From Hemiscyllium ocellatum (taxonomy: Eukaryota): DNA of 64,000 nucleotides. The position numbers and the translations under genes were made by a program. Under the pieces are notes generated by a model. It made no database searches and was not told the origin of the DNA. It saw only the letters and a program-made list of their open reading frames with translations. The stretch is taken from assembly GCF_020745735.1 (NCBI RefSeq), contig NC_083417.1, positions 72,726,001-72,790,000 on the forward strand, in the 5' to 3' direction. Shown here one piece after another: positions 40,861 to 52,696 of the stretch. Numbering within the stretch: position 1 is the stretch's first letter; each line of letters opens with the position of its first letter.

Positions 40861-41166
40861 CTGCTCCTGTACCCCTGAAGATTGTCTCCACGTCATTCCA
40901 CAAGGCTTCATCTACCTTTTTAAGACTCCAGTGTCAAACGGCTGAGTTTCATCCGAAGGAATTCAACCTTACCTGGTATAAAAATGGCAGCAGAATTCTG
41001 ACAGGAATTTCAACTGTACAACAGGAAACAACAGACAGACTGTATGAAGTGATCAGTTCCTTAGAAGAGGCACGGCCAATTGAACAAGGCACGGTTTACA
41101 CTTATCAATTCTATCATCTTTCTATCACTGGTCCAGCAAATTGCAGCTACATTGTCGACAATGTAG
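40861..41166 (+). CDS. Ig C1-set exon (gene C), open frame
   Basis: ttcaatttag| ... GTAG|gtaaaa, 306 nt, phase 1-1. APVPLKIV...LRLQCQTAEFHPKEFNLTWYKNG...LYEVISSLEE...GTVYTYQFYHLS. Second Cys is Tyr; sequons NLT, NGS, NCS. Confidence 0.9.
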
Positions 41167-42713
41167 GTAAAATTACAACATTAGATGCATGTATATGTTC
41201 ATCAGCAGTAGTTGAGCTGTTATTGCAGATATTTGTCACTTGTAAAATGTAAAGAGTACTCTGTATTTAATTCAATACCACTATGGAATCTTCAAATCTG
41301 CTAGTAATTCAGAATTTTATGCAAGCTCAACATAAATTTGAGTAGTGTGGCAGGATGCATTCATCTATCTAAATTCAGGCAACATATCCAGTACTATATT
41401 AAGCACAGGCATAATGTTGTACTCTACAGAATGATGAAAGCAGTGGAGGATCTCAAGGTGAAAGAGACTGTAAAATGACTTTAAGAATATATAAACATTG
41501 AAGCAGATTTGCAAAGAAAAAACTTGATGTTATTGTTTACAAAGTAATATCAGATGATATATTCTACTTGCAGTAATGAAATTTCTAAGTTTGTTACATA
41601 GAATTGCATTCAAATTAACTAGATAGAAAAGCTATTCAGTGTCCTGCTTCAGAGATGCTTAAAATCAGCTTAGCAGGAAAGTTTGGAGAAGCCCAGAAAA
41701 GGAGTGTGGATTCCTAAATTGGGGTAATGGTTTCACTGTGCTTAATTCTGGCATATATGCATTGCTGGCTGGACTGAATTTAGACATTATCTGAACATTT
41801 CGGCTGATTGATTTGTGCAATACGAAGTATGTTTTTGTTCGCTGGTATCAAAGATGTGATATTTCAGTTGTAGAGAATATACAGAGAAATAGAGCTGAGC
41901 TCCTGGTGCTAGGTAGGACAGATGTCAGAGGTAGTTTCTTTACTCCGAGAGTAGGATGGGCGTGGAATGTACTGCCTGAAACAGCAATACACTCGCCAAC
42001 TTTGAGGGTATTTAAATGCTCATTGGATATACACATGGATTAAAATAGAATAGTGTATTTTAGATGGGCTTCAGATTGTTGCACTGACCCGTGGAACCAT
42101 CGAGGACCGAAGGGCCTGTACTGCGCTGTAATGTTCTACAAGGCAACTCAATTAGCTGAGATTCCATTATATCATGGGAAATATATTAGTATTGATACAG
42201 GATCATCTAATAGGAAGATTTAAAAAATTGGAAGAAAGAGGGCACCTATACACTATATTTCACCTACAATTAATGGAGTGCTCAAACATCAATGCTAGGC
42301 CATAATATTTAAAATATAAATGAACTGGATGAGCACAATGAATGCACTGTCACTAAGTTAGCAGATGACACCAAAATAAGAGGGAAGGCAAGTAATGAGA
42401 GTGTCACGGGCTGCAGAGATATAGACAGGATATACAAGAGGGCAAAAACTTGGCAGCTGGATTATAAAGAAGGAAAACGTGAGATTTTGCACTTTTATCA
42501 GGAAGAAAAGAGGAATATTATTGAAATGGAGAAAGTTGCAGAAAACTGGAGTGCAAAAATTTGGGGTCCAAATGCATTAATCACCAAACCTAGCATCCAA
42601 ATTCAGCAGGAAGTCGGGAAGACAAATGGAATGTTGACCTTTATTTCAAAGGGAATGGCATACACAAATAGGAAAGGCAAAAGTGAGGACTGCAGATGCT
42701 GGAAACCAGAATT

Positions 42714-42864
42714 TAGATCAGAGTGATGCTAGAAAAGCACAGCAGATCAGGCAGAATCTGAGGAGCAGGAAAATCATCTGAGGGGTTTTTGCCCGAAATG
42801 TTGATTTTCCTGCTCCTCAGATTCTGCCTGATCTGCTGTCCTTTTCCAGCACCACTCTGATCTA
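42714..42864. repeat. 63-bp inverted repeat (Penelope-like foldback)
   Basis: Arms 42714-42776 and 42802-42864 with 3 mismatches; 25-nt spacer holding a broken hammerhead. Confidence 0.92.
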
Positions 42865-43279
42865 CACATATAGCCATTGGAGTGCATCATGTGGCTGAAT
42901 GGCCTACTTTTGCTCTTATGTTAAATGATGTTACAGCTATTTATTTATGACCCCTGACATGAAATTGGTAATACAGATAACCAAAATAATTAGGAGTCTT
43001 ACCAGGTGGAATCAAGAAGTATTACCAGGTCAGTTTCAGTGTGTAGTCCATCTAAATATATTGGTTGATCATATCCTATTTGTACTCCTCAAAGTCACTT
43101 AGACGGCAATTTCCAAACCCATGATCTGTACCACAAGGGTAGTTGATACATAGGAATACCAGCACCTGCAAGTTTCACACAACATCCTGTCCTGGAACTG
43201 TATCATCATTCCATTACTTCACCATTGTTGTGTCAAAATCCTGAAACCCTCTACCTCAGAATTGTACACCACATCGATC

Positions 43280-43990
43280 CTGGGGAATGTTGCTGAACAA
43301 AGACACCGTGGAGTGTAGATTCATTGTTCCTTGAAAATGGAGTCCCAGGTAGACAAGATAGTGAAGAAGGTATTTGTATACTTGCCTTTATTGGTTAGTG
43401 CATTGAGTATAGGAGGTGGAAGGTCACCTTGTGGCTGTACAGGACATTGGTTCGGCCACTTTGGAAAGTTGCATTTAATTGTAGTATTCTTGCTATTAGA
43501 AGGATGTTGTGAAACTTGAAAGGGATCAGAAAAGTTTTACAAGGATGTTGCCAAGGTTGGAGGGTTTGAACTCTTTGGAGAGGCTGAATGGGCTGGGGCA
43601 AATTTCCCTGGAGTTTCTGAGGCTAAGTAGTGACCTTACAGAATTTTATAAAACCATGAGGGGCATGGATAGGGTAAATAGCTGTGATCTTTTCCCCAGA
43701 GTGAGGAGTTCAAAACTTGAGGGCATAGGTTTAAGGTGAGAGGGGAAAGATTTAAAATGGATGTAAAGGGCATCGTTTTCATGCCATGGGTAATGCGTGT
43801 TGGAATGAGCTGCCAGCGCAGTGGTGAAGGCTTGTACAATTTTATACCATTTAAAAGGCTCCTGGATGCATGCATGAATAGGCTTTAAAGGGGTATGGGC
43901 CAAATGCTGACAAATTAAATTAGCTTATGTGGTCGGCATTAACAAGTTGGACCAAAGGGTCTGTTTCCATGCTATTCACAGCTCTATGAC
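43280..43990 (+). mobile_element. CR1 3' fragment
   Basis: KLERDQKSFTRMLPRLEGL and CR1 3' UTR. Confidence 0.87.
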
Positions 43991-44071
43991 ATCGACAGCA
44001 GTGAGTCAAAAATGGATGACATTATCATCTTCTTCAGGGCAATTAGAGATGGACAGTCCATTTTAACCAAG

Positions 44072-44194
44072 CTGAAAATGTGTTGCTGGAAAAGCACAGC
44101 AGGTCAGGCAGCATCCAAAGAGCAGAAGAATCGACGTTTCAGGCATGAACCCTTCTTCAGGCTCTGATCTCCAGCAGCTGCAGTCCTCACTTTC
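44072..44194 (-). mobile_element. Penelope-like insertion with 15-bp TSD and hammerhead core
   Basis: TSD tccattttaaccaag (44057-44071 and 44195-44209); minus-strand CTGAAGA-agggttcatgcct-GAAACGTC. Confidence 0.85.
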
Positions 44195-50737: not shown

Positions 50738-50814
50738 CTAGACAATCCCCATATTAGTTTAGAAAACCAAATTGTGTGGTCTTAATGCCGAAGATATGTT
50801 TTTTTTTAGATTAC

Positions 50815-51060
50815 TTAAATAGGCCCTTCGGCCCAACAAGTTCACACCAACCCGCCAAAGCGCAACCCACCCAGACTCATTCCCTTACACCTAACACTAC
50901 GGGCAATTTACATACCGTGCACATTTTTGGGGAGGAAACCAGAATACCTGGAGGAACACGGGGAGAATGTGCAAACTCCACACAGTCAGTCGCTTGAGGC
51001 GGGAATTGAACCAGATCTCTGGCGCTGTGAGACAGCAGTGCTATTCACCGTGCCGCCCAC
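50815..51060 (-). mobile_element. HE1-like SINE
   Basis: Reverse-complement head and core. Confidence 0.85.
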
Positions 51061-52030
51061 ATGGTGAGCTCTTAAGAACTAGCGTAGGTCAGAGACAAAA
51101 TGTTGACCAATTAAAATTCCTACTTAATTAACGTTCAATTATCTTTCATGGTCAGAACATAGAAATGCCCTAATTAGTGAATGTAACAACGCTGGTTGCA
51201 TTAAGATACTGTTTGTTTTTGTAACGATTGTGACTGTAACATAGATGATTAGACGCAGCATTAGGCGAGGTTATATAAAAAAACAGCTGGATCATTGATA
51301 GTAAATAGTTTACTACTGTACATCTCGAAGTAGTCAGATTGTCAGAATGGCATTTCACTCAATATAAAAAACAGAATTGGCTGTTGTGAGATTTGTTTTG
51401 AAAGACGTGTTAAGTTTAACTTGCTGTTTTGCAACGTTAAAAAAGCAGATAGTTTGATATTGAATCGGGAAAGAATGATATTGTATCATTGGGGAGACAG
51501 GCAAATCCTGGAGAATATTTTCATTAGGTTCCCAGTTAGACATGTCGGCAATGTTACGGAAACAAACATGAGAACAACAGCAAAACTAAATTCCGCTTTT
51601 GTTGTGTGAAATTCACCCTGCATCAGATGTGACAATTTTGGGCAGTTTTTTCGCCAAAATCAAGATATAATTAGATCAGTGCTGTCTACTTGCAGCCCAG
51701 TGAATTTGAATACTTGACATTAAGGAGTAAAATAAACCGACTGTTCTTTAACTTGCTCATACTGGAGGAACACAATTTATTGAGATAAGTTCTTGCAGCG
51801 TGTTTTGTGGTCAGGCGGTGGGACCTAAATTGGATAACGCTTGCTTCCCCGAAATTCCCTTGAAGCAGACGTTACTGTCACACGGGCTACAGAGAAATAC
51901 ATACTCATTTTAACATAGAAAGGAAAGAATTCACGATCCTTGAAATCCAAGTAGTGCTCCAATGTGTGTGAATCTCGGAGGTGCGGAACTAACTTCCTGA
52001 ATATTCATGTGTCTTTTAAATTCGAAGTAC

Positions 52031-52091
52031 CCGAAATTTTGAGAAAAGAAAACCATGTTCGCAGATAATCCGAAAGCTGGTGTAAAAACAT
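52031..52091 (-). other. Possible leader exon of a minus-strand gene
   Basis: gcaccATG; MFLHQLSDYLRTWFSFLKIS(G)|gtactt, phase 1; GC box upstream (~52185). Only weakly hydrophobic. Confidence 0.25.
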
Positions 52092-52544
52092 GGTGCTAAC
52101 CAGCCCCCAGCTCTCCCTCTCTCTGTCCATGGGCAGGATGGCGGGAGCGGCCCTGCTTCACATGAAGCCTGCGGCAAGGCAGCACCCCCGCCCCCAACAA
52201 ACACTGACCACACACTCTCACCAACTGACCGAACGGTAACTGCACAAGGGATGGCTGCAAAATATGCTGCAGGATGTGGTCAGAAACAAACAGTAGAAAT
52301 GTTGGGCAATATCTCTGTGAAATATGTGTTGATTTCTACAGAACTTTAACACCTCAAAGAAATACGTAGATTCTGCTTTCCTTCGGGCTAATACTAATCT
52401 GTTGCAAGGCGGTAAACAGCGATGTGCGAGGAAAGGTGGGCTCTGAATCTGTAAAATGCTTCTGAAATGTTCTACTTTGGAAACCTTCCTTCCATGTGTC
52501 TTTGATTCCATGTTTTTATCAAGAGTTGTTCCTCCTGCTCACAG

Positions 52545-52696
52545 TATTCTCCACTGCACGACATCTTCTGCAGGAACGAGGAGATATGGTGCTGTACCGG
52601 TCAGTTGCTAATGCAGAGTTCAAGGGCAATGTTCTCCGACTGGATACATATTCTGTAATTGAGATTTCAAAACCTGATGTTTATAATGCCATCTGA
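52545..52696 (+). CDS. Candidate terminal exon with ITIM-like and ITAM-like tyrosine motifs
   Basis: ttcctcctgctcacag| phase 1: FSTARHLLQERGDMVLYRSVANAEFKGNVLRLDTYSVIEISKPDVYNAI*. Contains VLYRSV and YSVI-x7-YNAI. Confidence 0.65.

Follow-up and report, generated by a model that had tools for sequence, protein, structure and literature searches.

The stretch of Hemiscyllium ocellatum (epaulette shark) DNA analyzed here, 64 kb long and hereafter called the window, carries three real exons of a receptor-type gene on its plus strand, which encode a C1-set immunoglobulin (Ig) domain, an Arg-bearing transmembrane (TM) span and a short tail (Table 1). The first-pass annotation had proposed a chain of six exons with correctly matching phases. 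Half of these are real, namely, the C1 exon, the TM exon and the exon that begins at 45753; the stalk exon, which holds a TGA, and the pieces at 46069-46100 and 52545-52696 were discarded. Nucleotide identity of the three real exons in two other sharks is 74-96%, and joined conceptually they give an uninterrupted frame of 178 codons, with all splice sites intact.

Table 1. Exons, proposed exons and the breakpoint-flanking segment at the locus, in window coordinates
Feature	Position	Strand	Remarks
C1-set Ig exon	40861-41166	+	phase 1 in, 1 out; AG/GT borders
Transmembrane exon with Arg	44677-44785	+	phase 1/2; DYHAVPVHLIDRSILGIMIIILAMIIFDHVTSDTLH
Tail exon, long form	45753-45879	+	(R)YQNEETKRNSVTIGKLEPCSECTPVGYDSASFKIHFLMTTV; stop TAA at 45877-45879
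Tentative alternative last coding piece	47409-47416	+	counterpart of the final coding exon in the Chiloscyllium RefSeq model
Segment just 5' of the orthology breakpoint	38972-40718		single-copy in the window
Proposed stalk exon	44425-44469	+	not an exon: in-frame TGA at 44427-44429
Proposed optional exon	46069-46100	+	unsupported: 3' of the ortholog-backed stop
Proposed ITIM/ITAM terminal exon	52545-52696	+	chance open frame, intergenic DNA

Exons at the locus and rejected candidates

The C1-set assignment made earlier was confirmed, since the exon scored 31.4 bits on Pfam C1-set PF07654 (cut-off 21; E 2.5e-7) and its PDB matches, at E 1e-7 to 1e-6, include SIRP-alpha at the top and MHC class II beta. 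The C1 domains of intact orthologs score 42-46 bits on the same Pfam family. The first canonical C1 Cys is kept in the window copy (LRLQCQT), and the second is a Tyr (TGT to TAT; VYTYQF) where Chiloscyllium, Scyliorhinus and Heptranchias read VYTCQV; the canonical intradomain disulfide pair, formed by a Cys in strand B and the YxC Cys in strand F, is not found in this copy.

The Arg-bearing TM exon also held up, both against orthologs and against a family TM-HMM, which matches it at E 6.6e-15; its best 19-residue hydropathy window is 2.45. Within the span, the Arg is placed close to the outer end (..LIDRSILGIMIIILAMIIFDH..). Chiloscyllium, Scyliorhinus and Heptranchias have in common the Arg-containing motif ..YRS.VG..II(F/L)(D/N)H.., of which the window copy has changed the conserved Tyr before the Arg to Asp and deleted one codon in the exon. 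Ray members of the family have the Arg as well, but within a different TM sequence.

The tail exon passes straight through the donor that had been proposed at 45811 to its TAA. This donor is used by neither Chiloscyllium model: the exon either goes to the TAA or, in the RefSeq form, uses a donor at 45839. Joining the GT at 45839 to the mini-exon at 47409 would give a protein ending in GYDTQ and a stop, and in Chiloscyllium an AG followed by CT CTA TGA (locus L002, position 26191) accounts for the GYDAL end of XP_072403667.1. The acceptor of the mini-exon is kept in the window, its use in H. ocellatum being only putative. Read by eye, the real tail of 41 residues contains no [SIVL]xYxx[ILV] motif. 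A tail of about this length without a canonical ITIM or ITAM implies a protein with no signaling tail of its own, so that the signaling tail claimed earlier falls away, its motif frame being a product of chance.

We consider it extremely improbable that the gene was built as originally modeled, i.e., from the C1, stalk, TM and tail exons plus the distant exon at 52545-52696 as the supplier of ITIM-like and ITAM-like motifs. The AG/GT borders of that model are present and its phase arithmetic works, and 52547-52693 has VLYRSV and YSVI-x7-YNAI, the only ITIM-then-ITAM pair of the window within one open frame. However, in the frame that the chain requires, the second codon of the stalk exon is a TGA, which Chiloscyllium shares, and the relatives P0003, P0152, P0156, P0001 and P0157 splice C1 directly to TM. 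An alternative stalk acceptor 6 nt downstream (AG 44429-30) skips the TGA; it was rejected because the exon is missing from all orthologs and the TGA is retained in Chiloscyllium. No relative aligns with the optional exon, the inclusion of which introduces a stop. As for the terminal exon, its frame in Chiloscyllium has a TGA at codon 11 as well as 2-nt and 5-nt indels, although the flanks are 92% identical; the last coding exon of the ortholog proteins is that at 45753 or the mini-exon at 47409, no family tail resembles the proposed one, and the frame matched no family protein and no Pfam family. Across the six frames of the window, 14 ITAM-like and 256 ITIM-like matches occur, and after 236 AG sites further downstream the needed frame stays open for 30 codons or more, each an alternative terminal frame; given these baseline counts, the motif frame is expected by chance.

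Orthologs and family placement

The closest relative is an uncharacterized gene of the bamboo shark Chiloscyllium punctatum (XP_072403667.1/GCC37682.1), predicted to encode a V-C1-TM receptor of 292/303 aa. The locus had been put forward as an undescribed system, an idea that does not survive the presence of this ortholog in public annotation. Amino acid identity is 93% between the C1 exon and residues 124-224 of Chiloscyllium P0003 and 84% between the tail exon and the C terminus of GCC37682.1 (P0152 residues 259-303), and the TM exon, found by tblastn with P0003, P0152 and P0001, is ~85% identical to its counterpart. Splice sites and phases are shared by the two copies, and some 18 kb of the window (40719-58603) is collinear with the Chiloscyllium locus, mostly at 92-93% identity. 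Further orthologs were found in Scyliorhinus torazame (P0156) and Heptranchias perlo (P0001 and P0157).

The exon chain of the Chiloscyllium locus consists of leader, V, C1, TM and tail, and that of the Heptranchias locus (L001) of leader, V, C1 and TM, where the model stops; the V-C1 intron is 8.2 kb long in the former and 0.86 kb in the latter. Chiloscyllium also has a head-to-head neighbor gene, the Ig exons of which fall beyond L002.

A tree of C1 domains placed the window copy as sister to the Chiloscyllium protein (support 100/99), within a clade of 13 shark and ray members (100/100) that also holds the ITIM-rich, long-tailed paralogs P0158 and P0011. Automatic annotation labels members of the family SIRP-like, NCR3LG1-like, tapasin-related-like or MHC II beta-like. 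Judged from sequence, the C1 exon belongs to a cartilaginous-fish V-C1 paired-receptor family that is predicted to be non-rearranging, and by position the locus is orthologous to a conserved, predicted shark gene for a small V-C1 surface receptor. With its conserved-Arg TM span and its short, ITIM-less predicted tail, the window copy fits the short-tailed subtype. A literature search brought up papers on UrIg/UrIg2 and on the shark MHC, none of them on the V-C1 paired-receptor family.

Missing leader and V exons and probable decay of the remnant

Orthology with Chiloscyllium stops at 40719, 142 bp 5' of the C1 exon. The first-pass annotation had found neither V nor leader exon, and both are indeed absent from the window: no plus-strand leader or V exon was detected in the 64 kb by tblastn with three orthologs, including the 93%-identical one, or with 161 family and match proteins as queries, and a family V-domain HMM run over the six frames of the window found no plus-strand V, its only match being a minus-strand V pseudogene at ~12 kb. 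When positions 1-18759 of L002 were compared with the window by megablast and blastn, only dispersed repeats were recovered. The leader, V exon and V-C1 intron would be expected where the segment 38972-40718 now stands; in a blastn search with 38900-40860 as query and the window, L002 and L001 as targets, nothing in the Chiloscyllium locus, 34.6 kb in length, corresponded to this segment. The upstream 40 kb of the window contains a LINE and two relics that derive from other genes of the family and lie on the opposite strand, with no Chiloscyllium intron sequence, and the window has no N runs.

Changes polarized with Heptranchias as outgroup numbered 12 substitutions and one codon deletion on the window branch, compared to four on the Chiloscyllium branch; those on the window branch include Cys81Tyr, Val83Phe, Val86Leu and the replacement of Tyr by Asp beside the Arg. 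The end branches of the C1 tree measured 0.074 for the window copy and 0 for Chiloscyllium. By hand arithmetic, the nonsynonymous rate on the window branch is ~8/313 = 0.026, which is half of the intron mismatch divergence of 0.052 and thus as expected without constraint. Synonymous changes are likewise skewed toward the window branch.

We regard it as probable that the locus, within the 64-kb window, is a decapitated and most likely non-functional remnant of a V-C1 receptor gene. The ancestral chain would have comprised a leader, a V domain, a single C1-set domain, a TM segment bearing an Arg close to the outer end, and ~40 tail residues free of signaling motifs. In intact relatives, the V-C1 ectodomain presumably binds ligand, and by mammalian analogy the membrane Arg may recruit an acidic-TM adaptor of the FcR-gamma/CD3-zeta/DAP12 kind, which would make the short-tailed receptor the activating partner of ITIM-tailed paralogs of the same clade; the models for such an Arg-adaptor pairing would be NKp30, NKp46 and SIRP-beta. 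In the epaulette shark copy, a rearrangement ending 142 bp 5' of C1 would have taken away the leader and V exons and left the C1, TM and tail exons, after which the remnant appears to have changed as if unconstrained, at the C1 Cys, the Tyr beside the Arg and the lost TM codon. The relic most probably arose by birth-and-death turnover of this receptor cluster. The non-rearranging receptor suggested by the first-pass annotation is upheld as far as membership in a V-C1 family with an Arg-bearing span is concerned, but not as a hidden intact receptor. Against the relic reading stand the open frames and intact splice sites of the three remaining exons, a pairwise dN/dS of 0.47, which comes from small counts and does not alone show neutrality, and the marginal nature of the relative-rate asymmetry (chi-square ~4 on 16 changes, by hand arithmetic).

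These same open frames and splice sites would be expected if the gene were still functional, its front exons (leader and V) being situated beyond the window, at over 40.7 kb upstream, or missing from the assembly only, and the Cys-to-Tyr change being tolerated. Loss of a canonical Ig Cys is not always disabling; another annotated family member, the Heptranchias ortholog, is without that of its V domain. We nevertheless think continued function unlikely: the V-C1 introns of the orthologs are far shorter than the distance required, the upstream 40 kb is occupied by the family relics and the LINE, no N runs mark an assembly gap, and changes of conserved residues are concentrated on the window branch. 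A weaker point is that no near-identical protein was present in the collection, which may not include the H. ocellatum annotation. It is less probable still, and in our view very doubtful, that expression of the remnant yields a V-less chain of C1 and Arg-bearing TM, with a layout like that of pre-T-alpha, which would start at the in-frame ATG at 40791 and use a translated polypyrimidine tract (MKVKYLKIISIFFSNLFSFSFNLA) as signal peptide. The ORF 40791-41252 is in frame with C1, the exons downstream are intact together with their splice sites, and for a catshark relative there is a predicted isoform (P0154) that skips most of the V domain. Yet the ATG is not conserved, being GTG in Chiloscyllium; the C1 disulfide Cys is gone and conserved TM residues are altered; and any translated pyrimidine tract yields hydrophobic residues. 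The further step, in which the decapitated gene would have been re-used from this lineage-specific ATG as a V-less Arg-TM chain pairing with an Ig chain or an adaptor, is slightly more improbable again.

Read as a decapitated relic, the locus is of little importance alone. It corrects the tempting but false lead of an antigen-receptor-like chain that would signal through an ITIM/ITAM tail of its own, and would be a further example of birth-and-death turnover among the V-C1 paired receptors of cartilaginous fish, a large family. It could also be used as a near-neutral comparator in selection tests of the intact Chiloscyllium ortholog. The family itself may be informative on V-C1 receptors before RAG-mediated rearrangement, for which its intact members are the better subjects.

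Comparison with known receptor systems

The window copy differs from its Chiloscyllium ortholog in the missing leader and V, the loss of the second C1 Cys, the Tyr-to-Asp change by the Arg and the lost TM codon. Like the SIRP family, in which SIRP-beta is the activating and SIRP-alpha the inhibitory form, the V-C1 family combines a non-rearranging V plus C1-set ectodomain with short-tailed, charged-TM members paired with ITIM-tailed ones. Unlike the V-C1-C1 SIRPs, it has one C1 domain, and where SIRP-beta has a TM Lys, it has an outer-end Arg; its sequence shows low identity with the C1 domains of SIRPs. NKp30 (NCR3) and NKp46 are short-tailed activating receptors in which a TM Arg near the outer end recruits CD3-zeta/FcR-gamma, and the V-C1 family resembles them in both tail and Arg. 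The ectodomain of NKp30, however, is a lone V domain without C1, whereas the family has C1 and the window copy has no V; when the ortholog V domain was compared with solved structures, no specific NKp30 match was obtained.

UrIg and UrIg2 are non-rearranging elasmobranch VJ-C1 genes that are considered kin of antigen-receptor precursors, UrIg2 consisting of VJ and many C1 domains, of which the nurse shark has nine and the epaulette shark eleven (PMC12227049, PMC10751288). The V-C1 family is like them in having a germline-joined V followed by C1-set, but differs from UrIg2 in its single C1 and in a TM and tail of the paired-receptor type. The two-domain V-C1 layout is also that of Ig light and TCR chains, from which the family is set apart by the absence of rearrangement signals, an unsplit V/J and membrane anchoring through its own TM exon. 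Ig light chains align to the V-C1 portion of the Chiloscyllium ortholog (residues ~76-215) at E ~1e-11 to 1e-13.

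Gene model of the plus-strand receptor

We consider it likely that the plus-strand locus is orthologous to a short-tailed V-C1 receptor already predicted in public annotation, and that it has been decapitated at the 5' end and is probably dead. Relatives were gathered with the C1 exon as query, by HMMER run exhaustively and by a search bounded in length. They included XP_072403667.1 from Chiloscyllium punctatum (292 aa; C1 93% identical to that of the window) and its older model GCC37682.1 (303 aa), P0156 from Scyliorhinus torazame (62% identity to XP_072403667.1), and P0001 and P0157 from Heptranchias perlo. 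All are laid out as leader, V, C1 and transmembrane (TM) segment (DYHAVPVHLIYRSILGILVIIILAVIIFDHVTSDMLH in Chiloscyllium), with nothing between C1 and TM and, where modelled, a short tail. When the window was searched with these proteins by tblastn, three plus-strand exons were recovered, which together form an open frame of 178 codons.

Exons and related features; positions are those of the window unless marked L002 (Chiloscyllium locus)
Feature	Position	Strand	Details
C1-set exon	40861-41166	+	101 residues, phase 1; acceptor tttcaatttag, donor gtaaaa, both clean
TM exon	44677-44785	+	ortholog tblastn
Tail exon	45753-45879	+	ortholog tblastn; TAA at 45877-45879; passes through first-pass donor 45811
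LINE, fragmented ORFs	~34.7-38.9 kb	+	GDSL-esterase-type ORF 35386-35811; reverse-transcriptase ORF 37482-38852 (RVT_1, 110.8 bits)
Family V pseudogene	12064-12328	-	possible leader 12490-12549; in-frame stop (NLL-stop-DD); frame change near 12152/12153
Family C1-set exon, frameshifted	31084-31372	-	frameshift near 31209-31214; YTC motif kept
L002 leader	10001-10054
L002 V	10364-10693
L002 C1	18901-19206
L002 TM	23448-23561
L002 tail	24522-24656

The C1-set assignment was confirmed by a Pfam score of 31.4 bits (cut-off 21), and a sequence search of solved structures placed SIRP-alpha and MHC class II beta-2 domains closest. The hallmark second Cys is missing, with VYTYQF where VYTCQV is expected.

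The first-pass annotation had proposed six exons, one of them optional, for a receptor with its own signalling tail carrying ITIM-like and ITAM-like motifs. Three of them (C1, TM and tail) are real, but the 3' end of the tail was misplaced and the others are spurious; joined exactly as listed, the six do not give an open frame. The stalk exon (44425-44469) has TGA as its second codon in the required phase, and none of the shark orthologs carries a stalk. Inclusion of the optional exon (46069-46100) adds another stop. The ITIM/ITAM terminal exon (52545-52696) lies within 52173-55389, which is 92% identical to the Chiloscyllium locus, the same level as neighboring noncoding DNA. Its Chiloscyllium counterpart has TGA at codon 11, and 2-nt and 5-nt indels put the YSVI and YNAI pieces in different frames; no family protein aligns and there is no Pfam match. 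The background of such matches is high: the six-frame window contains 14 ITAM-like and 256 ITIM-like matches, and 236 AG sites 3' of 45811 are followed, in the phase needed, by open frames of 30 codons or more. In our reading, the terminal exon is a frame that arose by chance and was singled out. In the Chiloscyllium RefSeq isoform, a donor after GYD joins a mini-exon at L002 26193 and the protein ends in GYDAL; the counterpart acceptor is kept in the window at 47409 and the product would end in GYDTQ. Neither this form of the tail nor that stopping at 45879 contains a canonical ITIM or ITAM; the claim of a signalling tail is not supported.

Probable loss of the leader and V exons

From 40719 (L002 18760) to 58603, the window is collinear with L002 (34.6 kb), mostly at 92-93% identity, a level consistent with a hemiscylliid. 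Upstream, orthology ceases at a sharp alignment breakpoint 142 bp 5' of the C1 exon: L002 1-18759 matches the window only in dispersed repeats, and window 38972-40718 is single-copy with no match in L002. The Heptranchias locus (L001) has the L002 exon order as far as TM, where its model stops, with a V-C1 intron of 0.86 kb. No plus-strand V or leader was found in the window by tblastn with the 93%-identical ortholog, and no plus-strand V by an HMM built from 13 family V domains and run over all six frames; the sole V-like sequence was the minus-strand pseudogene near 12 kb, in agreement with a separate first-pass annotation at 10903-12357. The window contains no N runs.

The 9 kb 5' of the breakpoint hold the LINE and other repeats. 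Within the single-copy stretch, ~39560-39710 resembles by eye a reversed tRNA-derived SINE head; ARAGORN called no tRNA. At 40791-41252 (+), an open frame runs from an ATG specific to this lineage (the Chiloscyllium codon is GTG) across the polypyrimidine tract and on into the C1 exon. Its N-terminus is hydrophobic by chance, and the frame is what a V-less reading of the chain is based on. A 1.2-kb block at 48016-49242 with a minus-strand reverse-transcriptase fragment (RVT_1) is absent at the matching L002 point (~26805), representing either a lineage-specific insertion in the window or a deletion in Chiloscyllium.

Constraint on the remaining exons

We polarized window-Chiloscyllium differences in C1 and TM with Heptranchias as outgroup. 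The window branch carries 12 substitutions and one codon deletion, against four changes on the Chiloscyllium branch. Residues that do not vary in the other sharks are altered by His39Tyr (WHKNG motif), Cys81Tyr, Val83Phe and Val86Leu, as well as by Tyr to Asp directly before the TM Arg. End branches in the C1 tree are 0.074 (window) and 0 (Chiloscyllium). Pairwise dN/dS is 0.47 (dN 0.044, dS 0.094) and intron mismatch divergence is 0.052; by our own arithmetic, the window-branch nonsynonymous rate (~8/313 = 0.026) equals half the intron divergence, the neutral expectation. The relative-rate chi-square is ~4 on small numbers, and synonymous changes are likewise skewed toward the window branch. 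These sequence comparisons support relaxed constraint on the window branch, short of proof given the few changes. That the frame and splice sites are intact does not argue for function, because ~13 substitutions in 534 nt would usually create no stop. P0001, the annotated Heptranchias ortholog (L001 10414-10725), has a V domain without the canonical second Cys (GTYFYVAKY), so Ig cysteine loss also occurs in apparently intact family members.

Family context and other relics

The first-pass interpretation is partly supported as regards family; an intact gene and novelty are not supported, and the ortholog is publicly predicted. The clade holding the window C1 has 100/100 support. Its short-tailed members (Chiloscyllium, Scyliorhinus, Heptranchias and rays) share a conserved Arg at the outer TM end, and long-tailed members (P0158 and P0011 of Heterodontus) carry several ITIM-like motifs; judged by sequence, this is the pattern of paired activating/inhibitory receptors. 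NKp30, NKp46 and SIRP-beta are established precedents for a TM charge that recruits an acidic-TM ITAM adaptor, and by analogy the TM Arg of the intact gene would do the same. Automatic names for the family are inconsistent (SIRP-like, NCR3LG1-like, tapasin-related-like, MHC class II beta-like). A literature search found no paper on the V-C1 family; the nearest publications describe UrIg and UrIg2, in which C1 domains are numerous (PMC12227049, PMC10751288).

The frameshifted minus-strand C1 exon lies head-to-head with the plus-strand one, and for this exon, too, the window yielded no V exon; a single deletion may thus have removed the heads of both genes. The LINE occupies the interval between these headless C1 exons. 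About 5.4 kb downstream of the minus-strand C1, 25675-25716 (-) matches P0025 over 14 residues where its post-C1 region begins, and is perhaps part of the same gene as that C1.
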